This document shows positions 11 to 53,835 of a stretch of DNA of 64,000 nt, piece after piece (positions within the stretch are counted from its first letter, which is position 1; the number at the start of each line of letters is the position of its first letter). Below the pieces are notes generated by a model. It did not search any database, was not told the DNA's origin, and saw only the letters and a list, made by a program, of their open reading frames with translations. The DNA is from Neoconidiobolus thromboides FSU 785 (lineage: Eukaryota > Fungi > Entomophthoromycota). The stretch spans positions 1-64,000 of the forward strand of contig MU626341.1 of NCBI GenBank assembly GCA_025603075.1, given 5' to 3'. Position numbers and translations under genes: made by a program.

Positions 11-1333
11 ATGTCTATTCAATTCGATCATTTACCTATTGTTTTATTAGAAGATATATTCAAATTACTGGATCCAACTAAACTATTTGACTTACGCTTT
101 TTAAACAAATACTTATTTAATATTGCAAATAATACAATTAAATATAATTTATCTTATTCAATTTATTGTTATTATGGGAGTAATCAATATAGTATATACC
201 AAAAAAACTTTATTGAACAAAATGGAACAATGATGAGGCATTTACATTTATATGATGGTAACCTCAAATTATTAAATAAATGTCCTAATATAACATCGTT
301 AGAGATTGATGATCAAGGCGATGACTTTGATTATGATGAAGGTATTGATGAACATACTGGATTTAGTATTAAAACAAATCTAACAAAACTAAAAAAGTTA
401 GTTATTTATAACAACAATATCGGTTATCTAAAGCTATTTAGTAGTTATCTCAATCAAATTGAAGTAATTGAATTAATGGAAATAAATGAAGAGGATGTAT
501 TTGTAATGAGTATCACTAATATAGTTAAACATCTTATTCCTAATAAACTAAAGTCACTAACATTAGATATTAATAAATTAAGTCTTGATGGATTAGATAT
601 AATAAAAACAAAGTTTGTTAATCTAAAAGAGTTAAATTTAATAAACTGTAATTTTCATGATACCCTGATTAGCCTCAACCCTAATGTCAACTTTGCATCT
701 CATTTAAAATTAAAAATTGAAGGATGTTTTAGCAATAATTTTAATATCAAATTCCTTGGTAACCTGAGTTGTTTGAAGCAAATAGAATTGAAAGATACAT
801 CCACTTATTTGTTTGATATGTGTAGTGATACTGAAATAATTGAAAAAGACAATTTATTTATTTCGGGACGTTCAGACTTCAACATGCCAATTGATTATTA
901 TTTAATGAAACTGGCTGACTTAAAACAACTGTATGTTTATAATCTATCTACAGGTTTGTTTAATATACTTTCGTTATTACCAAATATACAACATCTTTTT
1001 ATTTATTCTTCACCAATCAGTACATGGGACCCGAATAAAAAGTTTGATTTAAATGAAACTGGTAAATATAAAATTGAGTTTATAAAACAAATTACAATTG
1101 ATTTCTTAATCCTTTACCTAGATGAATTTCTTTCGTTTTTATCATTTTTTCCAAATCTTCAAGTTATTAAAGTCCCATACTTTGCTTTGAAAATGAGAGA
1201 ATCGACTGTTGTCTACAATCCACCTACTTCTTTACTTCTTATTGCCTCTATCCCGTATAATTGTGATCCAGAACTCTATCAAGCATTAGACCAGATTTTT
1301 AAAATGAATTGGATAAAGTATGGGGTTGTCTGA
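11..1333 (+). CDS. F-box/leucine-rich-repeat (RNI-like) protein, paralog 1
   Basis: Intronless 440-aa ORF; N-terminal F-box-like FDHLPIVLLEDIFKLL, then LxxLxL repeats; close paralog at 4763-6082. Confidence 0.8.
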   Translation: MSIQFDHLPIVLLEDIFKLLDPTKLFDLRFLNKYLFNIANNTIKYNLSYSIYCYYGSNQYSIYQKNFIEQNGTMMRHLHLYDGNLKLLNKCPNITSLEIDDQGDDFDYDEGIDEHTGFSIKTNLTKLKKLVIYNNNIGYLKLFSSYLNQIEVIELMEINEEDVFVMSITNIVKHLIPNKLKSLTLDINKLSLDGLDIIKTKFVNLKELNLINCNFHDTLISLNPNVNFASHLKLKIEGCFSNNFNIKFLGNLSCLKQIELKDTSTYLFDMCSDTEIIEKDNLFISGRSDFNMPIDYYLMKLADLKQLYVYNLSTGLFNILSLLPNIQHLFIYSSPISTWDPNKKFDLNETGKYKIEFIKQITIDFLILYLDEFLSFLSFFPNLQVIKVPYFALKMRESTVVYNPPTSLLLIASIPYNCDPELYQALDQIFKMNWIKYGVV

Positions 1334-2169
1334 ATTAGTTTCATTATTTTATCCAATTTTTGAAAAATTCTGTATTTTAAAAACTTCGCTTAAAATTCTA
1401 TAAAATCATATCTTTTATTAAAACAAAAGTACCCGAACATAGTTCTAAATCATTCTATTGTAGCTCATAATGTAAGTTAGTTGAATTTCTACTAGATCTT
1501 AAATACATGTTCTTATAAAATTTAATTGAGAAATATTTATTATCAACTGCTTTATAACCAACATTGTAGATTTATTATCAAACAAATAAACTACTTTAAT
1601 GTTATAATTACATTATTAATATATTGCCAAGTTAATAAATAGCTGCATGGGAGGGAGTGGTTAGCCCCAAAACTATAATCAACCATCCCTAGATAGTACA
1701 AGTAATAATAGTCTTTACATATTATTACAGTTACTTGTTCTTTGACTATTTATTAACTTAGATATTAATAACTTAAGTAATCTTAACATTTAGCAACCTA
1801 TTTCTATCATTCAGCAAACTACTTACTTGCTTAGTAAATATCGAAATTTTTAAATTCTCTGTTATCTTCGTAAGGTAAACTGGGATCCATCTTTTGATTT
1901 TTCTGTTTTCTAGACTCTATAACTCTAATTGGAACTATATCGCTTTTTTTTTGATGTATCAGATACTGGATAACAATGTAGTTTATTGTTATGTTTAATA
2001 AAGTGTAAATACTTCTTAATGCCTTGTATCTCTATTATTCTTTTTGTATTTTTATTTCTTTTATACTTTTTAAAAATTATATCTGTTTTCCCATTATTAT
2101 TAGTCGAGTTATTAATTTTATTATGCTCACAAATAAAAGCTTCAAGCCTTGAAATTAATTGATTGATAT

Positions 2170-8022: not shown

Positions 8023-8562
8023 ATTTCTATTAAATGTTAAACAAGTAAAAAGTAATAAAAATTGTTATACATATCATTTTTTATGTTGTATTTTAAAATT
8101 TAGGCTATGGCTTAAATTATTCATTACTATTTTATACTTCAGAAGATTCGATAAGCTGTTTAATGGAAAAACTTTATAGCTACTGTATCATACCTTAATC
8201 AAAGCATTTACACATCTGTCCAAGTGGGCTACATTTTGTTTAAAATTGAGTCACAGTTTCTACAACTCTATTGTGACTTAAATAATCATTCATTAAAAAA
8301 TAAAATTTAATAAAATCAGAATAAGTTATAAATACTTGGACATTAAAAAACTAAAAAAATAAACATTTGACTCTAGAAATTACTGCAAGTCATAATATAG
8401 TTGCAGGAGTATTTAAGATAAAATTACATATTTCAAAAGTAACAATTAAATTCATTTAAGATTGTTATAAAAAAATCAATATTAATGGATGATCTAACAG
8501 TAAAGAAAGATATATAAATATAAAATAGAAATCAATCGAAATTAGCTTCAAAATTATAAAAA

Positions 8563-8826
8563 ATGAGAAATTTCAATCTACTCTGTCTAATACTATTCTT
8601 TTTTATATTTATACTCAGTAACAGTAGTGAAAAGTTAATATCTAGTGGAAAAATAAGCAAAGGTAGTAGACATTTACTATCTTTATTTGGTTTTGGTTTT
8701 GGATCTCAAGCTATTGCAGGTGCTTTTGTTTTTATTATTAGTAAAGCTATAGAGACAATTACTCGAAAGATATTCAAAACAGTTACTACTCCACTTTTAA
8801 AAGCTAAAAAGAAACTAATCAAATAG
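8563..8826 (+). CDS. Small secreted cationic amphipathic peptide precursor A1
   Basis: 87 aa; signal peptide; Lys-rich Cys-free mature part; ungapped paralog at 9145; TATATAAA at 8511. Confidence 0.8.
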   Translation: MRNFNLLCLILFFFIFILSNSSEKLISSGKISKGSRHLLSLFGFGFGSQAIAGAFVFIISKAIETITRKIFKTVTTPLLKAKKKLIK

Positions 8827-9144
8827 AGTCTTATCACTCAATAAACTATTTATCTTTTTGTGAATAGAATTTATGTTATCATGTTGACTTTTAAGCTATT
8901 CCAAAAACTTCCTTGAAGAAATTTATAGAGATTTTATATAGCATTTTTAATGTAATATAAACAGTTGTATTTAAGGTAATTTATATTTATAAAGCATTTT
9001 TTTAATATTTTGAAAGGTATAAATTAATTTAAAAAGACAATTTGGGAAAATTAATAAAAATCAATATTAAACTTTGGATGATCAGAAAATAAAAAAAGTA
9101 TATAAAAAAGATAATCAATAAATACAGGCTTAATATTACAAAAA

Positions 9145-9408
9145 ATGAGGAATTTTAATTTGATATATTTGACAGTAGTCCTTTTAATTCTTATACTTAG
9201 TAGTTATGGTAAAGAGCTGATTGATAGTAGAAAAGTAAGTAAGGGTAGTGGAAAAGTATTATCATTTTTAGGCGTTGATTTTAAATATCAAGTTGCTGCA
9301 AGTGTTGCTGTATTTGTAGCTAGTAAAGTTGCACAAGGAGTGGTTATAAAATCTGCTAAAAAAATTACATCCCCGCTTTTAAAAGCTAAAAGTAAATTAA
9401 TTAACTAA
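9145..9408 (+). CDS. Small secreted cationic amphipathic peptide precursor A2
   Basis: 87 aa; 41/87 identical to A1 by hand alignment; duplicated promoter. Confidence 0.8.
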   Translation: MRNFNLIYLTVVLLILILSSYGKELIDSRKVSKGSGKVLSFLGVDFKYQVAASVAVFVASKVAQGVVIKSAKKITSPLLKAKSKLIN

Positions 9409-9924
9409 GTTAAATCGATTTGTCAATTTCTTTTATTTTATCATTATTAATTTTTAAAATAAACTGGTTTACTATTAAGTGCTGTTAATTTCTTTTATAT
9501 TTTATGTAACTTTGTTGATTATTTGGTTCCCATCATCATACAGATTAGAATAGTAGATCTAGAGAGTTTATAGAAGATATAGGCTAATTTTATTATAAAC
9601 TGTTGAAAGTATTGCTCAAATAGATGTCGCGTTATTATTAAAATAAAGAGAGTACCCAAATTAAGAGATATAGTATCAAAAACCTCAAGATCCTTTAAAT
9701 CTGTTTGAAACGTTAACTTTAACTCATACTTTTTTATAATTTGATGTTAATTTATACAAAAAATAGAAATGATAGGAGCAGTAATTTAGGAAATCGTAAA
9801 TGTATTTTTTGAGGTGCTTCTTTAGTTTGGGAACTCAAAACAATAGAATACTTTTTTTTTGAAAATTTTAATTTTTACAAGCATTAGTTGTTGGAATGGT
9901 AACAAAAAATTTAATTAAATATAT

Positions 9925-10023
9925 GGGTATATTTTTTTTTGGTTTCTTTGCTTTTTCTATTCTTTAAACACTATTTGAGTGGAAAATTATTAGCAAAATT
10001 CTCAAACACAAAAATATATCCCC
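9925..10023 (-). mobile_element. MITE copy
   Basis: Matches consensus; flanks ATAT/ATGT. Confidence 0.85.
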
Positions 10024-10467
10024 ATGTTTTTTGTTAAAAATTCACAACTTAACTTCGTACTACTCAAAAAGTGGACAAAATATTAAGGAAAAAAGGTAGT
10101 TTCATATGCTAAATCATTACTATTCTAATACAACCGTTAAAGTACAAATGGGCAATGACTAGTGGTAGCTTTTGTAACCAATAGTTTGTATTATTGTGCT
10201 TATTTACATCCAAATATTGGAATTTTGTTTTGAAATGAGAAGTAATTTATTATGATTAATACTTTACCAGCAATACTACCGATTAAAATCAAACTCTAAA
10301 AAGGTAGATCGTTTGATCAATGAGGCAGAATTGAAAGTAGTGAGAAGATCAATAATAAACAAAATAAAAAATATATAAGATTTTACATTTGATAAATTAA
10401 AGAAAAGATACATTTTCAAAAACAGATTCAACAAAAGTAAAAGTTATTTATAAACCAATATAAACAA

Positions 10468-10791
10468 ATGAAAGTGATAACTATAATTTTAATAATGGTT
10501 TGTTTGGTCCTATTTTACAATTGTAACCGTGTTTCTAAACTGCAATTAATAAGAAGGAGTATCAATCAAAACCCAAAGCCTTTGATTAGAAAGTTAATTA
10601 GAAGGAATCATAAGTCCATTAATTTCATCAAAAACAATTTAGTTGACTTGAATACAAATGGCGTGTTTAGCAGAAATAAAGACAATGAAGACAAAAAGGA
10701 CAAAAAAGAAAAAAAACCACTATTTGCTTGCTCATTCAACCTACCTTTCCTAAAAAAATCATCATCAAGTTTTGAGGATGACTTAATATAA
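10468..10791 (+). CDS. Small secreted basic protein E with repeated LIRR/LIRK dibasic sites
   Basis: Signal peptide MKVITIILIMVCLVLFYNC; LIRR|S and LIRR|N; TATATAA at 10372. Confidence 0.7.
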   Translation: MKVITIILIMVCLVLFYNCNRVSKLQLIRRSINQNPKPLIRKLIRRNHKSINFIKNNLVDLNTNGVFSRNKDNEDKKDKKEKKPLFACSFNLPFLKKSSSSFEDDLI

Positions 10792-11067
10792 ATAAAGTAC
10801 AATAAATATAGTAATTCATTTTGAATTTTAAAAAATAGAATAAATTGTACTTCATTGTTACTCTTTTAATTAAAATAAGATTTCTCTTATAACTCGAAGC
10901 TTTATAAATTATAAAAACATGTAACTGTAGTTTCTTTATTATAGTGCTATCTATTAATTTATGATAATTTCAAGCTATATAAGAAAAATCAAATCTAAAT
11001 CACATCAGTGGTAACTTGAATAAGTGGCTGATAAAAGGTTTATAGTTTATTTATTACTGTTTTAAGT

Positions 11068-11523
11068 TTAGAGTTTATCATCCTCGTAGTCCACGGGCTT
11101 ACTCATATCGACAGGCACACTTCCAGTTTGCGGTTCTTTTGGTTTAGGGACCTCACCATTTGTGATAGTTTTTACTGTTTTACCGAGTGCTTTACCAACA
11201 GCCAACCCTGCAACTCCTCCAGCAATTTCTCCTTTATTAATATCATCAGCATCTTTATTTCTAGTAGCATCTGTAACTCCTTTTCCAATTGCTCCAATCC
11301 CTACCCCAAGTCCACCGGCGACATTATTAAGTGGATTATAAATACCCTTTTCCTCTTTTTTGGTAACAGTGGAGCCAAAAGAAGTGCCTAGTGAGCTTAT
11401 AGTTGAACCAAGGGTACCACCAAGGAAGTTAAATGCGTTACCTTCTCCAGGATAAGCAGGAAGAGCAAGTAAACTATTATTAGATATCAATGCTAAGCAG
11501 ATTAAACTATTTGTTAATTTCAT
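11068..11523 (-). CDS. Secreted glycine-rich amphipathic (glycine-zipper) protein B1
   Basis: Signal peptide, three Gly/Ala-rich helices, ends DYEDDKL; paralog at 12411. Confidence 0.8.
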   Translation of the reverse strand: MKLTNSLICLALISNNSLLALPAYPGEGNAFNFLGGTLGSTISSLGTSFGSTVTKKEEKGIYNPLNNVAGGLGVGIGAIGKGVTDATRNKDADDINKGEIAGGVAGLAVGKALGKTVKTITNGEVPKPKEPQTGSVPVDMSKPVDYEDDKL

Positions 11524-12410
11524 TTTTGATTTATATAGTTTCTATAGTTAAATTGCTGACTATTTATAATGTTATTAGCCATTATTTAATAGATCGATTA
11601 TCATGATAAACATATTTTATTATTTATTTTAACCAATTCTAACATTAAACTGCATTAATGAAATCAAACTTATGCGACTGTATTGTAATATTGAAGTTTA
11701 AAAACTTAATTTTAGCCAGGCGGTAAACAATAATTTAAATTGTTATGTCTGTTTTATTGCAATGTATTGTTAATGCTTATCAATTGGCCTATTATCCTTA
11801 AAAATCAGTGTTTTTGATATCGAAAGCTTTTTTCATGTAATGGAAAAAGCTGAATGAACTATAAAATGATTTATGTCAAAGTTGCCCTTTATCTAATCAA
11901 TATCAGAATATTCACTTAAGTGCTGTGTTCGTTCAACGAAAAAAGAGTTATGACTGTTTACGGTATTAAAGATTATCCTTAAATCAACCAAAAAACTATT
12001 ATTAAATACTTCATTGACCTTATTGTATAAGTTTATGGAAAGTGGTGAATTCTTTTCGAAAAGTTCAGTCATTATACTCACTTTTTCACTCTCTTGTTAT
12101 TTTATATTTAGATTCCTTACCAGCCTTTGATCTAGTATGAATATGTGGTAAAACTCGCATTTGAAAAAATGAAGGGAAATAAAACATCGTTATTTTTATT
12201 AACATATTACTGATTGATATAAATGCAAAAGCCATACTTGAGAAAGGTAGAGACAAAGGTAAGACAAGATAGTAGTAAAAAAGCAATTACTCGTTTGTTC
12301 ATTTACCTAACTCAATTTCTTTGAGAAATCAGATGAAATAGGTGATAGTAATTATTAGATAAAAATCTTATTAACTTACCTTGAACCTTTAGTTTTTGAT
12401 AAATTTAACT

Positions 12411-12920
12411 CTAAAGTTTATCATCATCATAATCTATCGCACCATCTTTCACAATGACATTTTCTTTAGGTTTGGGTGTAGATTGTTTAGTTACTTCTCC
12501 ATTTATAATCGTTTTTAGTGTTTTTCCTGCTGCTGTTCCAAAAGCTACACCTGCAACACCACCTACAACCTCAGCTTTAGTAGCTTTCTCATTACCAAAT
12601 TTGGCTTTTGTTGCTGCTGTTACTGATTTTCCAACGGCACCGAAGGCAGATCCAAGACCACCAGCAATAATATTGACTGGATTATCTTTATCTGTTTCTT
12701 TCTCTTTTTTCGTAATTGCAGAATCAAATGAAGTGCCTATAGAGCTCATAACGGAACCTGCCGCAATTCCAAGGAAACCAACTGGATTGACTTTGTCAAA
12801 GTCTTTTGATTTAACTTGACCAAAACTAAATGATTTACCTTGTCCAAATTTAATTGGAAATGAATATAGAATGTTATTTAATACTAACGCTAACCCGATT
12901 ACATTAGTGAACAGTCTCAT
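12411..12920 (-). CDS. Secreted glycine-rich amphipathic protein B2 (start moved to MRLFTN)
   Basis: Paralog of B1, ends DYDDDKL; ATG at 12920 aligns with the B1 start; upstream TATCATGA and TATAAATAGTCA shared with B1. Confidence 0.8.
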   Translation of the reverse strand: MRLFTNVIGLALVLNNILYSFPIKFGQGKSFSFGQVKSKDFDKVNPVGFLGIAAGSVMSSIGTSFDSAITKKEKETDKDNPVNIIAGGLGSAFGAVGKSVTAATKAKFGNEKATKAEVVGGVAGVAFGTAAGKTLKTIINGEVTKQSTPKPKENVIVKDGAIDYDDDKL

Positions 12921-13057
12921 TTTCAATCTATACAAAGCTGTAAACAATTTGTTTTTGACTATTTATAGTATAGAGTAGCATACATAAATGATTTTCATGA
13001 TAGCCCTTTTTAAGAAAAAATTTAAATCTGGCGTACAAATCTAATTTTTTTTTATAT

Positions 13058-13151
13058 GGATATCTTTTCTGATTTCACTGTTTTTCCATTTTCTAAATGC
13101 TATTGAATCGAAAAATTATTAATAAATTGTTAAACAAGCATACTCATGCTC
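13058..13151 (-). mobile_element. Degenerate MITE copy
   Basis: Internal TTTTTCCATTTTCTAAATGCTATTGAATCGAAAAATTATT matches consensus; ends eroded. Confidence 0.7.
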
Positions 13152-13394
13152 ATGTTTCGTAAATTTAGCAGTTCCCTTTTAACAATTTTAAAGTTCTCTC
13201 AAAGTCCAAATCTCATAAAATGATATATTTTATCTGATTAGATTAAATGTATACCTTTAGTCAATAAAAAAATAAAATTTCTATTACTACATTTTTATTA
13301 TATTGAAAGAATTAGATTACAAAATGATTGATGGTGTATAAATGGGCACAAGGTTAAAGTAGAAAAACAATACTATATAGTTACATACTAGTGT

Positions 13395-13470
13395 AGTAAT
13401 ATCTCATTTGGCTTCATTACTTTCTCTGTTTTTTAAGCGCTATTAAGTAAAAAAAAAAGGTAGTAGATTA
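13395..13470 (-). mobile_element. Partial MITE copy
   Basis: TTTGGCTTCATTACTTTCTCTGTTTTTTAAGCGCTATTAAGT matches consensus core; boundaries approximate. Confidence 0.55.
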
Positions 13471-14285
13471 GATAAAAAAGATATTTACATGTGTATTTCT
13501 AAAAAATCATTTTATCAACTAATGTTTTAAAATTTATATCAAAATTCTAATAAACTATAAGTTAAAACACTGCCAAATAAAATATTACAATTTAAGCTTG
13601 AATCATCAGTCTATTATGAAATTTCGAAGAGTACATATTACTTTTAAATTGCAAAATTTGAAAAATCTATTTATCTAGTGTTCAATAAAAATTGAAAATT
13701 TCAAAATAAACTAGAATCTAAGCTTGTATAATTTTAATAGATTCACTAAAATGACAAATGAAATGCTATAAATGGATATTGATGTTAATTTTCAAGTTTG
13801 AAAACTAAAAAACATATTTATTGAAAAATTAGCTTAAAATTAAGACAATAATAGCTAAATGCCAATAATTGAGCTTCTATGATCTTTAAGTATAATAAGA
13901 ATATTCACTAGTAAAGTATAAATCATAAATGATAAGAACCGTCTATTTCTTTATTTATAAAAATCCAAAGACCAACAAAAAGGATCCTTTTTAATGCTTT
14001 CATTATTGTAGTTAATTTCCAGGGGGGAGTAGTTACCCAAATTAATTGGTTAAATTAAATTAAAGCCACCAATTGAGAAGCTATGATTGGTTGAAAATTC
14101 AGTTCTTAATAAAGTTGTTCAATTTTCCACCCATTTAAGCTTAAAAAAGACAAATTGAACTGCTTTTTTTTAATTAATTTAAATTATTCAATCAACTAAA
14201 TAACTTTTATTGAAAGTTATTTATTTTATATAACTATTAGTCTTTTTTTATCATCATTAACATAAAGCGATAATTTTATTCTATC

Positions 14286-17200
14286 ATGTTATCACCAACA
14301 TCAACCGATCGACCATCCAGTAGGATTTCAATTAATTCAACAGCTTCACAAAGTACCTCAGTTAAAGTAGCAGTAAGGGTACGTCCATCCGCGAATAAAG
14401 CAAGAAAAGGTACACCAATGAATCATGAAAATATAGCAATACAAGTGTCCATGCCATTAAAAACTATATTTTTACCAACATCCAAACAAAGCTATGTATT
14501 TGATTATGTATTTGATGATACTATTACTCAACCTACTATTTATGAAACAGCTATTGATCCCATGGTTGCTACTTTTATGTCTGGTTTTAATGTTACCGTA
14601 CTTGCTTATGGTCAAACTTCATCAGGTAAAACTTATACTATTGGGACATCTGGGGTAGAGGATTCTGACTCAGAAGGTATTATTCCAAGAGCTGTGCGAA
14701 GCATCTTTGAAAAATGTAATCAATTGGTATCATCTGAAGAAGAAGTGGAACTGGAACTTAAAGTATCTTATTTAGAACTTTATAATGAAGATTTATTTGA
14801 TCTTTTAAATGGCGGTGTTGGAGCTGGTAAATCCAATGTAGCTATTAGAGAAGATAAAAAAGGTCGAATTATTTGGTCTGGTGCTAAAGAAGTAATAGTT
14901 GCCTCTTCACAAGATGTTTGGAAGTAAGTTTTTTTAAGTTGAAATTTCTTTTGTTATTAACTCCTATTTTAGCTTATTACAAGAAGGATCTACAAGGAGA
15001 AGTGTAGCTAGTACTAAAATGAATCAAAATTCTTCACGTTCTCATGCTATTTTTTCAATTAATTTAATTCAAACTAAAACTAAAAATCAAATGAAGACCC
15101 AATTAAGGTCCAAGTTCCATTTTGTGGATCTTGCTGGTTCAGAAAGTGTAAGTTTAAATTATTATTTAAAAAATGGACTTTACTTAGTGTAAATTTTTTA
15201 GTTGAAAAAAACCGATGCAAGTGGTGATCGAGCTAAGGAAGGTATCAACATTAATTCCGGTTTATCCGCTTTAGGGAATGTGATAAGTGCTCTAGCTGAT
15301 CCAGAATTAACCCATATTCCATATCGTAATTCCAAATTAACCCGATTATTACAAGACTCAATTGGTGGTAATAGTTATACCGTAATGATAGCTTGTGTAT
15401 CACCCAATTTAGCGGATATTTATGAAAGTCAAAGTACTTTGAGTTATGCTCATCGAGCGCGTAATATCAAAATTAAAGCAAAAAAGAATCAAGAGGATGT
15501 AACGGATGTTAAAGCATTAAGAAATATAATATTTAGTTTAGAACAACAATTAAAAAATTCCAAAGATGTTAAAGATGAAGTAACACAAGAAGAAATTATG
15601 AGAAAAAATATGATGATATTTTCATTAACAAAAGATAGTTTAAAATATCGTGCTACCGTAGATAAATTAAAAAAACAATATAGTGATTTAATTGAAAAAG
15701 TTAGTTCTCGTCGTTCCTTGACTTCTATTTCTAGAGAAGATTTATCAAAGTCATTTATCAGTGAAGATATTTCAGTGACTTCAGATGCAACCGCAGATAC
15801 CAATCCTTATATGAATTTTATGTCCATTCTTGAAGGTTATGAAGAAGAACAAAATAAATTAAAGGAAGAAATTGATAACTTGAATAAAAAATATTCAAAT
15901 CAAAAGGAAGAACTTATAGAAGCTCTTACCCAACTGGTTGACGTGGAAACAGAAAACGAAAAGGAAAAGAAAACTGCTCAAGAACAAAAAGATCAATTAA
16001 GTAACTTGGAAAATAAATATCAATCTCTCTTTAAGGTTGTTACTAGTCTTAATGAACCAATAACTAATTTATTATCTTATGATAACTTGGAGTTTGATTC
16101 TACTAAGCTTATTGAACTGTCTGAAGAAGAATTAGAGTTAAAATTAAAAAAAATTCAAGAACAAGCTTTATTAATCAATCTAGAAAAACAAGAGATGTCC
16201 AATAAACTACAAACCTTAATTAATGAAAATACTGAATTACGTAAAGACATAGGAACTTATTCCAATTCCTTATCATTACAATTTAATAATCCAGAGTTAT
16301 CAAAATTACAAGTTAATCACACAAAAGATGCAAACGGCGATTCAAGCCTTAATGGTTCACCAGCTACTAACCCAGATATTAATGTACCTACCGGTACTAT
16401 TAGTAGCTTAAATTCAGATATGGTATCTGAATTTAATTATTTAGAATTAAAAGAAAAGTATGAATTGATTCAGAGAGAAGCTGATACTTTTCGTCAACAA
16501 TTGGTAGCATATGGTCATTTTAATAGTGATGAGAGTAATCAACATACCATTCAAAAACTTGAAGAAGAAATTATTAGTTTGGAAAAGAATGGAATGGAAG
16601 CGAATGTAAAGGAGATTAATGGGACTGAAATAAAGGAGAAAAAAGTCGATGGAGATATAGATATGGAGGAGTATAAAGTAAATGAATTGGAGTTGATGAA
16701 AGAGATAGCCGATTTACAACATTTGCTGGCAAATAAGAATGATATTTTGATAGACGCAGAGAGTAAAACTCAACAAGTGGAACTTGGATTTAGTAAGTTT
16801 AAATTCGAAATGGAAAGGGAGATATTAATTTCTAAAGAAAAAATTCAAAGTTTAATGAGTCAAATCGATATATTAAAAGAGAAGTCTGATGAGGATGATA
16901 AATTGAAGTTGGAATTAAATCATCAAATTGAAACTTATAAACAAAAAATTAACGAATTGGAATATCAATTTAATAATGAGGATAAGTTAAAAAGTGATTT
17001 AAATCAAGAAATTGAGACGTATAAATCCAAAATAAGCGAATTGACTAATCATATTGAAGAATTGGAAGTTAAAGGTACTACTGACGATAAGTTAAAATCC
17101 GATATGAATCAAGAAATTAATAGTTATAAACAAGAAATTGACAATCTAAGTAATCAAATTGAAGAATTGAAACTTAAATCAATAGAAATTGAAGAATCTT

Positions 17201-18636
17201 TTAATCAATCTAAAGAAGAAGAAATTGAAAATATAAAGAAAGAATGTGAAAATAAATTAAAATTAAGCGATATTAAAATCCAAGAATTAGAAGATATTTT
17301 TAATCTTCAACTTAATGAATATAAAACATTAACAAGTGATAAAAAGATACTTGAGGAAGAATTGAACTCCAAAATTAGTGAAATTGATGACTTAACAGAA
17401 CAATATAATCAGGCTTATTCAGCTTTACAATTAGATTTTAAAATGAGTAATGATTTTACGGATTCTTTGAAAAAAGAATTGATCCAAAAGGAACAAGAGA
17501 TTGATAATAAAAACGAAGAAATCAATTTGATTCAAGAAAAGTTACAAATTTATGAAAATGAATTAAAAATAATGGATCAAAAAAAGAAAGAAATTGATGG
17601 ATTAAATACAAAAATTGAACAACTTCATAATGATATTCAAATTCAAGAGAAAAACTATTCCTCAGCATCCACAAGAAATAGTCAATTATTAATGGATTTT
17701 GATCAACAACAAGAAGAAGTTAAGGTATTAAGTATTAAATTAAGTGAAACAAGTAAAGAGTTGGAAGAATTTAAACAAAAATATGAACAAGAAGCGATTG
17801 AAGTTAAACAAACAAAATCCAAAATTGAACAATTAAAACTTGAAAAAGATCAGCAAGTTCAATTACTTCAACAATCATCTGATGAAATTCAACTTCAATA
17901 TGAACAAAAACTAAAAGAATCAGAATCCGTGATTAAAAATATGGATTCTATCAAATTCGAATTAGGTTTGGCATTAAAACAAATTGGAGAACACAAAGAA
18001 ATAATTCAATCTCATGAATCGAATAATCAAGCTTTAAAACTAGAAATTGAAGCTAAAAAAGAAATTATTAATCAATTAAGTAATGAAGAATCCCTATTAA
18101 AACAGGAACTAAATCAATTAGAATCTATGATGAAAGAGAAAGATATGGAAAATCATGAATTACAAAGTTTAAAAAGTAATAGTCCCAGTATTACTAATGA
18201 TGAATTACAAACTATTTTACAAGAAAACAAAAAATTACGTATAACAATCGACGAATTAAGAGCTGAAATTCAATCGAATAATGAATTAGTAGAAATATTT
18301 GAAATCGAAATTCAAAAAAGCGATAAAGAAAAAGAGACACATATGACTCAAATCAATGATTTAAAATCACTTGTTTCTGAAAGAGAAAACAAATTAAGTC
18401 AAATCATGGAAGAGTTACAAACTCAAAGAAGAGAAAGTAAATTAACTATTGAAGATTTGGAAGTGAAGCTACAAACATTAAGTAGAAAGAGCTCTTATCT
18501 TACTAGAAATCATTTAAATTCAAATAGTAATGTAGATGATTCCAGTTCGAGGACAGAATCGGTTAGGAATTCGATTTCTCCTACACCTTCTCATACTGGG
18601 TCCCGTAGGAGCAAGAAAAAATTTATGTGTATTTAA
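14286..18636 (+). CDS. Kinesin-4 (KIF4/KIF21-like) motor with long coiled-coil tail; introns 14924-14972 and 15148-15201
   Basis: P-loop [10 protein letters not shown], switch I SSRSHAIF, switch [32 protein letters not shown], then about 1000 aa of coiled coil. Confidence 0.92.
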
Positions 18637-18853
18637 AAAAAAGGAAGTTGGTAATTTTCTAGTGGGTTAATGCTTATTAACTACGTTATTCTTTTTTAAT
18701 AGCAATTATTTTCAATTAATAAAAAAAATTATTTTTATGTTTTTATTTTTTCATTAAATTGGATTTTGAAACAGCTTAAATTGAAGATTATGAATTTTAA
18801 TGAAATTGAAATCAAAATTGCATTTTTTAATCATTTTAATTTCTATATAAAAC

Positions 18854-20056
18854 ATGAGTTGGTTTCCGTCTTACAAACCCCAAAATTTAGATGATGATTA
18901 TAGTAGTATTGAAGAATTTAGTAGCGATTTAGAAGGTTGGTGTATTAATTCCAAAAAGATTAAACTGAAAGAAGAGGTAGAACAAGTTACTCAACAACAA
19001 GTAATTCAACAAGAAGTGATTGAAAACAAACGTTTTAATGCAGAAGAGGAGTCGAAGGAAGAGGAAACTGAAATATTGGAAGATATTGAAGAATTTAGTA
19101 GCGATATTGAAGCTAGAAATCAAAATAATAATAAGCTTAAAGTAATGAATGTTGATAGTTTAAATCAGCAATTTAATATTAGTAATGATTCGATTGAGTA
19201 TAATAGTATTTCAGAGACTTTTGAAGAACAAGATTCAATATTACAAGGACTTGATTTCAATGATAAAGTACAAGATCCATTACCTGAAGAACAAAATAAA
19301 GAGATGGAAATATTTGAAACTGCTTGTATTTCCGATTTTATTCATGAAAGTTATGTGAAAATTTTGAATGCTGAAAAACAAAATGATCCTCAATTAGCTA
19401 TTGATGTATTTACTAAAAATAATAAGGAAGAAAAGGTATATTTTAGTAATGAGTAAGTTGATTTTTTTTATTTAAATTTGTAATTATCAATTTTTAATAA
19501 AGCAATTAGAAAAAATAGTCTGGCTTTTCGATGTCAAAAAGTATATCAAGAATGTGAAATGGATCATAAATTATTCGATTATTTGAGATTTACTAAAGGT
19601 AATATTTAAGATACTCTATTAAAAGATATTTAAATAATATAACAGAATTAATTGATATTAATTTTAGATTTTAATCCAAAACAAAGTATTAAAGTGAAAA
19701 TAATATCAATTGAAAATCAACCTCAAACTAAAGATTTGAATTTATTTGAAGAAAATGTTATAAACTTTAATATAGTTTTAACGGAGATAATACAACTTCA
19801 TGATACTTCAAACAACAATAGTAAACAACATCAACTTCAAATTGGTCAACAAATAATAGTTATATTAATTAATTCTTTTATTGATTTTGAGATAAAAGAT
19901 TATACAAAATTAAAATTAATTGAATTAAAAAATCAATTGTTAAAAGAAGATTCATATTTGAATATCTATCACCCTTTTTTTATTAAAGATTGGAAATTAA
20001 ATCATATTAAGGAATGTCCAGTTGTTATTACTTATAAATTCAATTTGTGTAATTGA
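18854..20056 (+). CDS. Hypothetical multi-exon protein, acidic N-terminus and possible OB-fold C-terminus
   Basis: ORFs 18854-19456 and 19652-20056 linked by a short exon (IRKNSLAFRCQKVYQECEMDHKLFDYLRFTK) with GT-AG junctions; exact splicing uncertain. Confidence 0.6.
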
Positions 20057-20479
20057 TATAGGAATAGTCAATAAAATGAGACATTGAAGTTGATAATGGT
20101 AGCAAGTGATAAAATTGAAAGAAGAAGAATCGGTAAATTAATTTTTATTTATTAAAAGTTTAAAACTTATTGATATTTTACTATTTCATTTCATTTTTAT
20201 TATAGTTTATAATTGTATTTTGTATATATTTTTCTTAGCCTTTAATAATTTTCAAAGCCAAGCTTCGCTTTGAAACTTCTATTTTTAGTAAATACCAATA
20301 TAAATTTGGATTTTGATTTACAATTATGAAGATTAAATTTTTTATTTCAAATGTTAATAAATTGTAAAATATTAAATTAAATTCAACTAAAAGTAGTTTA
20401 TGTATATAAATAATATAAATTCAATCATCTGATATATCTTTGATCTTTATTTTTATTTTCTTTTATTTTAATAATAAAA

Positions 20480-20770
20480 ATGAAATTAATATTTATAACA
20501 ACTTTTATGCTTACCATCAACATTATTTCCACTCTTCATGTCCGTAACTTTCCATCACGACATCGACATGAATTAATTAAACGAGATGATTTTAATCCAT
20601 TTAATCTATTTGGTATAGTAGTGAATAACTTATCTAAAGCAATCACAGAAACTACCTCAAAAGTTACTGGGACTATTGCAGTAGGTGCTCATTTATTATC
20701 AAAACAAGATGTGGTACCTATGATTCCTAAAGCTGAAGAAAAGGTCAATCCAGACCAAGATAAAATTTAA
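20480..20770 (+). CDS. Small secreted prepro-peptide D with Kex2-type KR site
   Basis: Signal peptide, pro-segment ending ELIKR, then DDFNPFNLFGIVVNNLSKAITETTSK...DQDKI. Confidence 0.78.
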   Translation: MKLIFITTFMLTINIISTLHVRNFPSRHRHELIKRDDFNPFNLFGIVVNNLSKAITETTSKVTGTIAVGAHLLSKQDVVPMIPKAEEKVNPDQDKI

Positions 20771-20961
20771 TTAAGCTACAACTGGTTGAGCATATAATTT
20801 TGTTTTTTATATAATATAAACAGAAATAAATAAAAACATTCAAATTAATAGTAAATAATAATAATAATGAATTAGATTAAGTTTAATTGAATATATTTTA
20901 TTTTATAAATTAAAGAAAGAATAAGAAGATAAGAGAAATATCAAAAATAAATTAAACAAGA

Positions 20962-21555
20962 TTAAAGTTCATCATATTGGTTAGAACTATTAATAGATGA
21001 ATTGTTATCATTGTCAATTCCCATTTCTTTATTTATACTATTAAAATAATTGTTTAAATTGTTTTCCATATTATCGTCCATTAATTCATCTTCATTCTCT
21101 TCGTCTTTATTTTTATCCCTTCCTATTACCTCTTGTGATAAGTTATCTTTCATCAATTGTTGATTTCTATTACCCATTAACGCCATTGCCATAAATTTCA
21201 TTTCATCTAATGAATATTTGTTCCCTGGTATTAACACTTCTTTATTACTATTTAAATATTGCATTAAACTCTTTAAATCACTAATAGTAATAGCCTCAAA
21301 ATCCGGATTGTTTCTTAATCCATTAAATAAAACTTGTTTTTTATTATAAATATCAGCTACTTTTTTAGTACCCATAGATTTCAATGTAGATAATTGAGAT
21401 TTAAGTACAGGTTTATTACCATACTTCCCAAGTTTTTTAAAATTAATTTGATTTTTTGCTGTTAGTATACCCTGTGCTATAAACTCCCGGTCCACTTTAA
21501 GACACTCAATAAAAAGAGGTAAGGTTAATAGTAAAAACCAAGGGTAATATTGCAT
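20962..21555 (-). CDS. Signal-peptide protein F ending in YDEL (possibly ER-retained)
   Basis: MQYYPWFLLLTLPLFIEC leader; basic N-half, Asn/Asp-rich C-half; C-terminal QYDEL. Confidence 0.72.
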   Translation of the reverse strand: MQYYPWFLLLTLPLFIECLKVDREFIAQGILTAKNQINFKKLGKYGNKPVLKSQLSTLKSMGTKKVADIYNKKQVLFNGLRNNPDFEAITISDLKSLMQYLNSNKEVLIPGNKYSLDEMKFMAMALMGNRNQQLMKDNLSQEVIGRDKNKDEENEDELMDDNMENNLNNYFNSINKEMGIDNDNNSSINSSNQYDEL

Positions 21556-21559
21556 TGTA

Positions 21560-21588
21560 TTCTATTTTCTATTTTCTATTTTCTATTT
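21560..21588 (+). repeat. (CTATTTT)n microsatellite just upstream of the F start
   Basis: About four copies of ctatttt. Confidence 0.8.
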
Positions 21589-22281
21589 ATTGATTACTGT
21601 TAATTAATATTATTAGTTGCTGTTGATGATAAAGAAATATAATTCAATTCTTGTCCTTGCTTTTTGTTATTTGTTATTTCTTTTTTCTATTTTCATTCTT
21701 TGTTTCATCTTAGATTATCTTTTGATAAATTTGGTCTATCAGACATCAAGTTTTCAGCAATTAAATTGAAATGTTTGAAATTAATAAATTTAGTTTTAAA
21801 TGTTAGAGCAGTTTAGATTACATTTAGATTTTCTTTGTTGCTTTTAATTTGACGCCAAATTCTTTTAATATGAATGTAAAGATATATAAAAAGTTGTATC
21901 TTTTAAATTCAATTTAAGAAAATTAGCATCAAATTAAAAATAATAAAAGAGATCTAAATGTAAGTTGCTTTAAAATTGATTAATAAAAATAAATATTTCA
22001 AATTAAAGTTAATAAAAAAACAATAAGTTTCAATGTCTTATTTATTAAAATAAAGAAGTATACATATAAATGAGGATAAAAACAATATAAAGAGAAGCTT
22101 TGTATAATCGATATAGAATTTTTTTAATAATTACTTTTTCTTATCTTCAACAAAATCTAATTTATTTTAATATAATAACTAGAATTTACTAAATAAAAAC
22201 ATTAATCGATGATCTACGTAACTTTCAATTATAAAAATAGCTATCTCATTTGATTTTTTCAAATATTTACTTCTTTTCAAT

Positions 22282-22551
22282 ATGAGGTTTAAAACTTATC
22301 ATTTGATATGTATAAGCTTACTTTTATTAATCTCAATAGCCAGTGCTCACCCATTAGAATCTGAAAAATTAGATGATGAAGTTAATAATGAAAAGAAAGC
22401 GAACAAGAATATATTTTCAGTAGTGGGCACAGGTATCAAAAATGCATTTATTGGCAATACTCCTATACTATTAATTAGTAAAGTCATTCAATCCAACTTT
22501 AGAAAATTAGGTAGGAAATCGTCCGCTTTGTATGTTACTCCTAAGGATTAA
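22282..22551 (+). CDS. Small secreted peptide precursor C1 (acidic pro-region, cationic core)
   Basis: Signal ending ASA|HP, acidic ESEKLDDEVNNEKK, then cationic amphipathic segment; paralog at 24089. Confidence 0.8.
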   Translation: MRFKTYHLICISLLLLISIASAHPLESEKLDDEVNNEKKANKNIFSVVGTGIKNAFIGNTPILLISKVIQSNFRKLGRKSSALYVTPKD

Positions 22552-22658
22552 GAGAATTATTGAAAAAATAAAAAAATTCTTACTTTTTTTACTTAATATT
22601 GATATTAACATTGATGTTGATATCGAACTTATTCATAAAATCAAATTTATAATTAAAT

Positions 22659-22758
22659 TATGATGTTCTTTTTGGTTTCATCACTTTTTCCATTTTCTAA
22701 ATGCTATTTGAGTAGAAAGATTATTAGTAAAACTCTTAAACAAAAAATGTATCCTTTT
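22659..22758 (-). mobile_element. Degenerate MITE copy
   Basis: Core matches consensus; ends eroded. Confidence 0.75.
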
Positions 22759-22979
22759 ATGTTTTCATTATTTTAAGAACTTTATTTTATTTTATTTTAT
22801 TTTATTTTATAATATCATTTATTAAAAAAATAAGTAATTTGTTTTAATATTTGATCTTATATCAATTTATTAGTATTTACAATTATCTTTTAATAACTCA
22901 ATCTTTAACATTACAACATAAAATTAAATTTAAAATAAATTAATATAAAATCAACTTGAATTAAATACTACCTTAATAT

Positions 22980-23078
22980 AGGGATGTATTTTTAGGTTCA
23001 AGAATTTTACTAATAAAATTTCCGCTCAAATAGTGCTTAAAGGATAGAAAAAGGAATGAAGCCAGAAAAAACATTCCC
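22980..23078 (+). mobile_element. MITE copy (first of inverted pair)
   Basis: AGGGATG...CATTCCC ends, ATAT duplication. Confidence 0.88.
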
Positions 23079-23096
23079 ATATAGTGATTCCCATAT

Positions 23097-23190
23097 AGTG
23101 ATGTTTTGATTTTATCACTTTTTTTGTCTTTTAAGCACTATTTAAGTAGAAAGATTGTTAATAAAAAGTTTAAACAAAAAATACATCCCC
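23097..23190 (-). mobile_element. MITE copy (second of inverted pair)
   Basis: AGTGATG...CATCCCC ends, ATAT duplication. Confidence 0.85.
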
Positions 23191-24088
23191 ATATGACGGT
23201 TATATCTTTATTGTTGAAGGTTTTTTAATAGTTTATCTAATCAATAGTGTCTAAAAAATGTGAAAATAATTGAAACTTGAAAAGACATTCCACATGAATT
23301 GAAAAATCATAAATATTCAATCTCACTAACAAAAAATAAAAGTATAAAGATTAAATTTAATTTAAAACTAAGCTTTGAAACTTGTAAGATTTACTAACAC
23401 CAAAAGTCATAGTTTATTTTACTAACCTTTTCCCTTTTTTTCTAATAAATTGCCATAGTACAGCCTGTGAGTAGATGCCTTTCACTGTTTTTGATATAAG
23501 CTATGCGATACATCCTCTTTCAGATCTTTAATTTTCTATTATAATTTAACGCTAAATTAAAAACAAAAAAAGACATTTAACTATAAATTGCTTTAATAAA
23601 CTTTATAAACAAAAAAACAAGTTCTGAATACTGTATTAAAATCGTTTTAAAAAGCTCACTCCAAACTAGGACTTTATCCTAACTCATGTATAACTTTTAC
23701 TCTATTTATTAAAAGTAGCCAAATAATACCCAGTAGACTATCTTCAACCATTCATTTCAAATAGTCTCGTGACAAATTTCTTAAAACAAGATAAGACATT
23801 GAAAGTGATTGTAAGAAAAAAGTGTTATTAAAAACTCTTCTTCTTCATTCCAATCCGCTCCATCCTAACTTTCCTTTCATTGACGTTTTTATCAAATGAA
23901 TGTCAAAACGTTTTTCTTGAATTTCAAAAGAAAAAAGTAGATAAATATAGTAAATGGGTTATCATACCAATCTCCAAGTTCCAGTCAATCCCAATATTCA
24001 AGGATGTTTATCAAAACTAAAAACGTATATAAACTACACATAAACTCAAAAAAAAACAAGATTCAACTAATATAAAAACAAGCTCTAA

Positions 24089-24334
24089 ATGAAATATCAT
24101 CTAAATTATCTTAGAATTATTTTTTTAATATTTATCGCTAATAGTCAATGTAAACAAACGAATGCTAATGGAATCAATAATAACGATAAGTCTATATTAG
24201 CTTCATTTGGTACTAAATTTAAAGAGCAGTTATTTAAAAGCACTATATTGTTGGTAGTTTATAAAGTAGCTCAATCTAACTTTCGAAAATGGAGTAGAAG
24301 CTCATCTGCATTTTATGTTAAACCCAAAGAATAA
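24089..24334 (+). CDS. Small secreted cationic peptide precursor C2
   Basis: Signal peptide; C-terminal KVAQSNFRKWSRSSSAFYVKPKE matches C1 KVIQSNFRKLGRKSSALYVTPKD. Confidence 0.8.
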   Translation: MKYHLNYLRIIFLIFIANSQCKQTNANGINNNDKSILASFGTKFKEQLFKSTILLVVYKVAQSNFRKWSRSSSAFYVKPKE

Positions 24335-26140: not shown

Positions 26141-26651
26141 ATATTTTATTTCACTTTACGCTATCTCAACTTTACTTGTCTAAATCAACTTATACAAAAC
26201 AATATAAAGCAATAAGTACAACTCGATTTATTTTAAAGCAGATATTCTCCAATTAATGCATCTTCCACATATCACTTAATTAATCTTTACCTCTTTTCTA
26301 AGCCTCCTTTTTCACACTGTATCACAACTTATTTGTCTATTATTTCACTTTTATCATTATTTTTAATTTATTAGTATAATACTTGGTAGTTACTTTTTCA
26401 ATGTAAAAAAATAAAGCTTGTTCTTAGATTCAAAACTTTTTTTAGTACTTATGCATTATACGACTGTTTAAGTTTAATTACCAATATGTAACTGTTTATT
26501 TAAGAATAAATTTTTAGTCACAAATTTTCAAAGAGTAAGGACTAGGTCATGAAAAAACCAATTAAATAAATAGAAGTTAAAGTTTTTTCATAAACAAACA
26601 TATTTGAATTTAAAAACTGTAACTAATAAATTCAACTCAGAAAAAGTAAAT

Positions 26652-26749
26652 GAGGATGTATTTTTGTGTTTAAGAATTTTACTAACAAATTTTCCACTCA
26701 AATAGTGCTTAAAAAACGGAAAAATAATGAAATCAAAAAAAACAGCCCC
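26652..26749 (+). mobile_element. MITE copy
   Basis: GAGGATG...CAGCCCC ends, AAAT on both flanks. Confidence 0.92.
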
Positions 26750-27242
26750 AAATCATAAAATTCAAAACTAGTCACACTTTTTTAGTGGGTCCAAAATTAA
26801 TTAAGGGGTTTATTAAAATAAAAAGATGTCTATAAAAAATTTTGTTTTTTATTTTAAAATATTAATTAAATACTTTTAAATATTTAACTATATTTAAAAT
26901 AAATTAAAATTAACATAAAATTTAAAAATAAATTAATTTTAGTTAAAGAATTTAATAATATTATATGGCTGACTTATTCTTTAAACTAAAAATAAAATGG
27001 AGTAATAATGCAATGTACTAAGAATCCTAAATGCTATAATAAACTTAATAAACTTTTTGAAAAATATGGAAGGATACAAAAAAGGTAACATAAACCATAA
27101 CTAATAATTTATTAAACATAATATTTGATTATAATAAATTTTTCATTATAATAAAATTTTTATTATACGTTTAAAAAAATTAAAATTAAACCTAAAATAT
27201 ACAAATACACGATACAAAAGTCACAACTAGTTACGTAAAACT

Positions 27243-53403: not shown

Positions 53404-53737
53404 GTATTTTAGATTATTAAGTTAATAAAAATGTTAATATACTAATTACTATGTTCTTGGTTTTGTATATCTGAATTTAATTTTGTGGATAGTTGGATTT
53501 TAATCATCCTTTTATATTACGCTTTTATAACTATCAGCTTTTTTAAATTAACAGTAATAAAACAAGTGGCAGGTTATTATCAAAGAGTGATGGCGTTGTA
53601 AAGTTGAAATATCGAATATTAGTAAATGACTGGTTATTACCCAGTGCTATGATTGATAACTATTTGCAAAACCTGATAATAGTAGGATCAAAGGAAATTC
53701 TACTTTTGTAATGATTAATACAGTATTTTCATTAAAT

Positions 53738-53835
53738 GGGGATGTATTTTTGTGTTTAAGAATTTTACTAATAATTTTTCCGCCTAAATAGCGCTTAAAA
53801 ATCGAAAAAATAATGAAGTCAAAAAAAACACTCCC
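53738..53835 (+). mobile_element. MITE copy
   Basis: GGGGATG...CACTCCC ends, AAAT duplication. Confidence 0.92.

Follow-up and report, generated by a model that had tools for sequence, protein, structure and literature searches.

A tandemly amplified orphan family of small, basic, cysteine-free proteins with predicted signal peptides in Neoconidiobolus thromboides

Four short genes on the forward strand of a 64-kb stretch of the Neoconidiobolus thromboides FSU 785 genome (contig MU626341.1, positions 1 to 64,000; this whole stretch is the window below) encode small proteins that we describe here as one family. The open reading frames (ORFs), named A1, A2, C1, and C2, are all present exactly where a preliminary description of this DNA had placed them. 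A1 (8563 to 8826) encodes 87 amino acids (aa), with a predicted signal peptide from residue 1 to about 22, a polar stretch, a 24-residue uncharged hydrophobic run, and a basic tail; A2 (9145 to 9408), also of 87 aa, is 47% identical to it. C1 (22282 to 22551; 89 aa) has a predicted signal peptide, an acidic stretch ending in KK, and a part of net charge +7 with a GNTP kink. Its paralogue C2 (24089 to 24334; 81 aa) is about 40% identical to it in the mature part and lacks both the acidic pro-region and the GATGATC module found upstream of the other three genes. The safest statement is that these genes are a real, orphan, tandemly amplified family whose products, strongly basic and without Cys, are predicted to enter the secretory pathway and to be helical.

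All four N termini have the n-, h-, and c-region layout of signal sequences, as judged by eye and with a crude filter, which agrees with what had been proposed for them; Kyte-Doolittle hydropathy (KD) reaches 3.4 to 3.6 over 10 aa in A1, A2, and C1, and the h-region of C2 is shorter. When a strict signal peptide filter was applied to the 54 ATG-initiated ORFs of 50 to 400 aa in the window, only 4 passed, and 3 of these are A1, A2, and C1. The mature parts are 58 to 67 aa long, and none has a Cys downstream of its predicted cleavage site. Their net charges are +11 (A1), +10 (A2), +7 or +8 (C2), and +4 (C1; +7 after KK), so that the Cys-free mature parts and the charges counted by hand in the preliminary description (A1 +11, A2 +10, C1 +7 after KK) match the computed values. 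When the remaining proteins encoded by the 64 kb were scanned in 60-aa windows, only about 2 to 3.5% reached a net charge of at least +7, and the high charge is therefore not a by-product of AT-rich codons.

The proteins share a 32-residue ungapped block of the form xxS/AxxG, 16 residues, [SY]K[AV][IA][EQ]xxx[RI]K, located at 8674 to 8769 in A1 (aa 38 to 69), 9256 to 9351 in A2 (aa 38 to 69), 22411 to 22506 in C1 (aa 44 to 75), and 24194 to 24289 in C2 (aa 36 to 67). In that order, LLSLFG, VLSFLG, IFSVVG, and ILASFG are followed after exactly 16 residues by SKAIETITRK, SKVAQGVVIK, SKVIQSNFRK, and YKVAQSNFRK, and a MAFFT alignment of the complete proteins needs a few small gaps. Local alignment scored against composition shuffles gives z values of 29.7 for A1/A2 and 21.8 for C1/C2. 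For the four A-versus-C pairs z is 6.9 to 11.9 at full length and 3.4 to 7.6 once the first 24 residues, the signal peptide, are removed. We also shuffled residues only within each of three segments of the block, a stricter null because it preserves the hydrophobic-then-basic layout; the A-versus-C pairs still gave z values of 4.1 to 5.2, with 0 to 1 of 20,000 shuffles reaching the observed score, and the pooled column-permutation z for the block was 5.8. By these comparisons the shared block is not accounted for by layout or composition, and the earlier claim of a single family in ungapped register is upheld by both the block and the A-versus-C local alignments.

Divergence within each pair has the marks of coding sequence. 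Indels comprise whole codons, and the stop codons line up within A1/A2 and within C1/C2. Pairwise Nei-Gojobori ratios of nonsynonymous to synonymous substitution (dN/dS) are 0.43 for A1/A2 and 0.25 for C1/C2, rough values with large dS (0.9 and 1.9). The family had been called diversifying, and these ratios do not bear that out; they are pairwise values, and site-level tests require more sequences. Codon-usage log-likelihood is uninformative, as it does not separate the four genes from other short open frames.

Further copies exist elsewhere in the assembly (24.6 Mb in 799 contigs). A 1,363-bp duplication module containing A1 and A2 (8412 to 9774, forward strand) has two further copies on contig C366 at 98 to 99% identity. 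These lie about 11.1 kb apart, and each is followed by sequence matching window positions 1316 to 2095, which makes the module part of a tandemly repeated unit. The three copies of the module vary at 3 sites in 528 coding bp versus 22 in 835 noncoding bp; two ORF copies are identical and one carries a single synonymous change. A profile search of the whole assembly recovered A1, A2, C1, C2, and the additional copies on C366, and at E values up to 10 found no family members outside the window and those copies. Three weaker matches were rejected as due to chance: one on contig C357 (E of 0.016, TAG stop) falls in repeats and has no reading frame, and those on C20 and C176 (E of 1 and 4.45) are parts of large ORFs unrelated to the family. 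We regard it as very probable that A1, A2, C1, and C2, together with the at least two near-identical A1-A2 modules on C366, constitute a real, intronless, paralogous, and lineage-restricted family. The unit carrying the A1-A2 pair measures roughly 8.5 to 11 kb, and contig C84 apparently begins inside the array. C366 opens with an incomplete copy of A1 that differs by two amino acid changes, A63V and T76A.

Three of the genes also share an upstream element. A1 is preceded, about 45 nucleotides (nt) before its ATG, by GATGATC, 18 nt, and TATATAAATA (8488 to 8520, forward strand), and a pattern search placed the corresponding forward-strand modules of A2 (GATGATC followed by TATATAAAAA; 9077 to 9108) and C1 (GATGATC followed by TATAAAAA; 22208 to 22237). 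The pattern GATGATC-N15-30-TATAWAWA has 3 matches in the window versus 0.12 expected, and all 3 lie before A1, A2, and C1, at 45 to 75 nt upstream of the ATG. Genome-wide, 5 of 7 GGATGATC versions belong to A1 or A2 copies; the two other GGATGATC-TATA matches, on contigs C9 and C26, are inside unrelated ORFs with no small signal peptide gene downstream and were set aside. The TATA boxes of the three modules are at 8511, 9099, and 22229, with GATGATC at a fixed distance ahead of each. The GATGATC-TATA module is a candidate family-specific cis-element, as judged from its distribution, and A1, A2, and C1 are probably co-regulated through it.

Searches for relatives returned none. Pfam at E values up to 10 gave only noise, with Bombinin (PF05298) unmatched; a word-indexed search of 5.8 billion proteins with an alignment query found no relative; HMMER, run exhaustively with a profile against 1.84 billion representatives, gave 0 matches at an E value of ≤0.001; and a profile search of the PDB was likewise empty. 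Among JGI metagenome contigs, 164 pattern matches yielded 0 confirmed relatives. Look-ups of the exact products of the family genes were blank, literature searches on such a family found nothing, and A1 had no usable match in the ESM Atlas. C1 had look-alikes there at 0.78 to 0.83, including a C5orf46 antimicrobial-peptide-like cluster (0.81) and Bombinin (0.78), scores that shuffled proteins also attain in a third of cases. Homology to candidalysin was rejected for all four proteins (z of −0.9 to 1.2 in local alignment against composition shuffles; the query peptide was confirmed as present in PMC5784256), and no sequence similarity to melittin was found with the same approach. A match to a known nontoxic family, which had been named as a way to overturn the cytolytic interpretation, was not found in the Pfam, protein, and PDB profile searches. 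These negatives have a limit: related fungi may carry small unannotated ORFs that protein databases would not show, and no translated search of a eukaryotic genome collection was made. The family is an orphan, a new gene family.

Contigs from two runs, X1 and X2, were placed over the C1-C2 region. In X1, a small run only presumed to be RNA, three exact contigs at depths of 2 to 4 cover 22426 to 22690, that is, the 3′ half of C1 and about 140 nt downstream; X2 contigs match only repeats. One X1 contig skips 58 nt (22526 to 22583) with intron-like GT..AG borders when read on the minus strand (GTAAGA...GTAAC...AG), and the size and shape of the skipped stretch match introns of this genome. Because this splice reads on the minus strand, at least part of the X1 signal may be antisense, and a spliced antisense RNA may cross the 3′ end of C1, where we found no usable minus-strand ORF.

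The gene family is well supported and its function is a hypothesis. Our preferred reading, built on modeled features and analogy and held tentatively, is that these are secreted, membrane-binding helical proteins that perturb foreign membranes. A cleavable signal peptide would lead to export of a 58- to 67-aa, Cys-free, Lys-rich chain with no globular fold and a predicted helical structure; given the distribution of possible cleavage sites, whole chains of this length are the likely products. The mature part would begin with a short polar lead, which in C1 alone is acidic, and a conserved hinge of small residues and Gly; 16 hydrophobic, non-amphipathic residues would follow, and then a conserved segment, cationic and amphipathic, that carries a basic tail. 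The basic C-terminal helix might dock on anionic membrane surfaces, the hydrophobic stretch might then bury itself in the bilayer, and microbial or host membranes might be perturbed or permeabilized, the polarity of a hydrophobic N-terminal and a basic C-terminal part being that of melittin and candidalysin. In favor of this reading are the charge of +4 to +11 without Cys, the predicted single helix, and the amphipathicity of the basic C-terminal third from the SK motif onward, where the maximum hydrophobic moment (μH) is 0.58 in A1 and 0.46 to 0.47 in the others; the same calculation gives 0.52 to 0.56 for melittin, magainin 2, and candidalysin and 0.78 for LL-37. Tandem amplification, fast divergence, and a lack of relatives are typical of effector or defense peptides, and we count their occurrence in this family on the same side.

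Several observations weigh against a membrane-perturbing role. The preliminary description had called the peptides amphipathic, which is correct for the C-terminal third and fails for the conserved 16-residue core, which is plainly hydrophobic (μH of 0.03 to 0.2 in single sequences and about 0.1 in the family profile). None of the four single-unit ORFs of 81 to 89 aa contains a KR or RR dipeptide, and the mature products exceed most linear cytolytic peptides in length. AlphaFold models of A1 (pLDDT of 67) and C1 (pLDDT of 64) show one long helix with no tertiary contacts, and they rest on four-sequence alignments and are of low confidence. The C5orf46 and Bombinin scores of C1 lie within the shuffled-protein range given above. 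X1 coverage over C2 is nil, and the sole spliced X1 contig points to the minus strand. Finally, A1 could be a type I membrane anchor, because its 24-residue uncharged run (KD of 1.84) is followed by a basic tail of +7.

That last point belongs to a broader alternative, in which the family comprises type I single-pass micro-proteins of the fungus's own membranes, small regulatory or structural subunits with a cleaved signal peptide, a short luminal stub, a transmembrane helix, and a basic cytosolic tail. The A1 run and tail agree with the positive-inside rule, KD in A2 reaches 1.91 over 19 aa, and the single long helix of the AlphaFold models would suit such proteins too, but charges break the stretch in A2 (D and K), C1 (K, plus N and P), and C2 (K, K, E, and K). 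The longest uncharged runs in these three are 13, 13, and 10 residues, leaving A1 as the only protein with an uncharged hydrophobic span of at least about 19 aa after the signal peptide. Rough insertion energies, from a position-independent Hessa sum, are +2.2 kcal/mol for A1 versus +5.0, +8.0, and +11.4 kcal/mol for A2, C1, and C2, and with their core charges the latter three would probably not serve as stop-transfer anchors. The family has thus not conserved a transmembrane anchor, and most members are more likely to be released from the cell; moreover, housekeeping micro-proteins are seldom orphan, tandemly amplified, and so divergent. We consider this alternative unlikely. A somewhat stronger contender, though still rather improbable in our estimation, is that the proteins are secreted and nonlytic, small basic proteins acting as lineage-specific effectors or surface/matrix proteins that bind a target on the host or cell wall, such as polyanions, nucleic acids, or a receptor, and leave membranes intact. 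An orphan family clustered among other small signal peptide ORFs (E at 10468 to 10791, B1, B2, and D), basic and without a fold, would be expected of such proteins, the dN/dS ratios below 1 indicate a constrained sequence, and the amphipathicity is only moderate. Set against this is the best-conserved part of the proteins, which includes the 16-residue stretch with its many Ile, Val, Leu, and Phe residues and could stay soluble only with difficulty unless a membrane or partner were present.

The model of the preliminary description, that these are precursors of the venom or frog-skin type (signal, acidic pro-piece, and dibasic cut) releasing short cationic amphipathic cytolysins, now seems very unlikely. 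It was drawn from a layout that does hold in C1, where the acidic stretch (net −3) ends in KK and leaves a remainder of +7; the language-model features of C1 also weakly resemble Bombinin-type precursors (0.78). The pro-piece and KK are absent from C2, A1, and A2, however, and since they occur only in C1 and no member has KR or RR, the analogy to frog-skin and scorpion precursors is not a family feature; in addition, the core is not amphipathic, Pfam gives no match to Bombinin or any other family, and shuffled proteins reach the atlas score of 0.78 a third of the time. Still harder to sustain is the proposal that these are not functional protein genes at all, only chance or decaying ORFs or noncoding or antisense transcription units. 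It would fit the lack of an annotated product on record, the minus-strand splice among the RNA-like contigs, the failure of codon usage to set the genes apart from other short ORFs, and our estimate that about 0.75 ORFs of such length per window are expected by chance at 25% GC. Yet the four frames are homologous, each begins like a signal peptide, their stops align within pairs, their indels comprise whole codons, and their dN/dS ratios are below 1; the ORFs are less divergent than their flanks, three of them have a common promoter module, and the minus strand offers no usable ORF.

The membrane-perturbing reading can be set beside several known systems. How entomophthoralean fungi cause disease and compete is poorly known at the level of individual factors, and the only well-characterized fungal cytolytic peptide toxins we know of so far are the candidalysins. 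In Candida they derive from Ece1 (PMC5784256, PMC8787473). The N. thromboides proteins resemble them in being fungal, ribosomally made, Cys-free, helical, and exported through the secretory pathway (the last two predicted here), in having a hydrophobic N-terminal part followed by a Lys-rich C terminus, and, in C1, in a mid-helix GN-x-P kink (GNTP versus GNIP in candidalysin). They differ in having no sequence similarity (z of ≤1.2), in being 58 to 67 rather than 31 aa long, and in their production: Ece1 is a polyprotein cut at KR by Kex2, whereas here each gene has one product and no KR. With linear cationic helical peptides such as melittin, magainin, bombinin, and spider cyto-insectotoxins, the family shares a predicted signal peptide, the absence of Cys, positive charge, helical propensity, and tandem loci, and its C-terminal μH of 0.46 to 0.58 is near the 0.52 to 0.55 of melittin and magainin; spider cyto-insectotoxins, at about 69 aa, are also similar in size. 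Unlike those peptides, it has a non-amphipathic core, an acidic pro-piece in C1 only, and no dibasic KR, Pfam match, or homology. Lineage-specific families of small secreted candidate effectors in fungi are likewise orphan, small, clustered, equipped with signal peptides, tandemly duplicated, and rapidly divergent; however, they are mostly Cys-rich or folded, in contrast with the Cys-free, strongly basic, predicted single helix here. Yeast Pmp1 exemplifies small type I membrane proteolipids that have a basic tail; A1 resembles them in its short N-terminal lead, one hydrophobic helix, and basic juxtamembrane tail, but the uncharged helix is not kept in A2, C1, and C2, and no homology was detected.

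Taken to its furthest, the comparison with candidalysin would make this an independently evolved, ribosomally made, linear, Cys-free, membrane-permeabilizing family of an early-diverging fungus associated with insects, a second and unrelated fungal origin of candidalysin-like toxins or antimicrobials, deployed as a co-regulated tandem battery against host cells or competing microbes; we offer this as a speculation that is more probably wrong than right by a good measure. If validated, it would add fungal effectors or antimicrobials of a new class, along with a set of peptides that can be synthesized and tested. Even if the proteins are nonlytic, a clean orphan family that is tandemly amplified and has its own promoter module lends itself to studies of how genes arise and are co-regulated in a fungal genome rich in AT.

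The window as a whole is eukaryotic sequence with a GC content of 23 to 30%. Its genes include one for a kinesin, interrupted by short GTAAGT...TAG introns, one for an F-box protein, and a homeodomain/HOY1-PH gene whose closest protein atlas clusters are fungal, with Mucoromycota the commonest. The kinesin gene (14286 to 18636, forward strand) lies midway inside the cluster of small secreted proteins and has at least two short introns (about 14925 to 14972 and 15148 to 15201; GTAAGT...TTTTAG). Small ORFs with signal-peptide-like starts are found nearby at 11068 to 11523 (minus strand), 12411 to 12947 (minus strand), 20480 to 20770 (plus strand), and 20962 to 21555 (minus strand). Such neighbors had zero Pfam matches and no detectable kinship to the A/C family. 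Two glycine-rich neighbors, B1 and B2, and peptide D were considered as members for their FLG/LFG resemblance by eye, and we excluded them because hhalign probabilities were 0.1 to 2.4%. The tails of neighboring ORFs are reminiscent of endoplasmic reticulum retrieval signals: two Gly/Ala-rich paralogues end in DDKL, a 96-aa ORF in DQDKI, and a 197-aa ORF in YDEL.

Short dispersed repeats resembling miniature inverted-repeat transposable elements lie between C1 and C2 (22612 to 22765 and 22920 to 23227), with copies at 2168 to 2521, 26651 to 26750, and 53737 to 53835. Their summed contig depth is hundreds-fold in runs X1 and X2 at 90 to 95% identity, and most of the distance by which the C1-C2 interval exceeds that between A1 and A2 is due to them.

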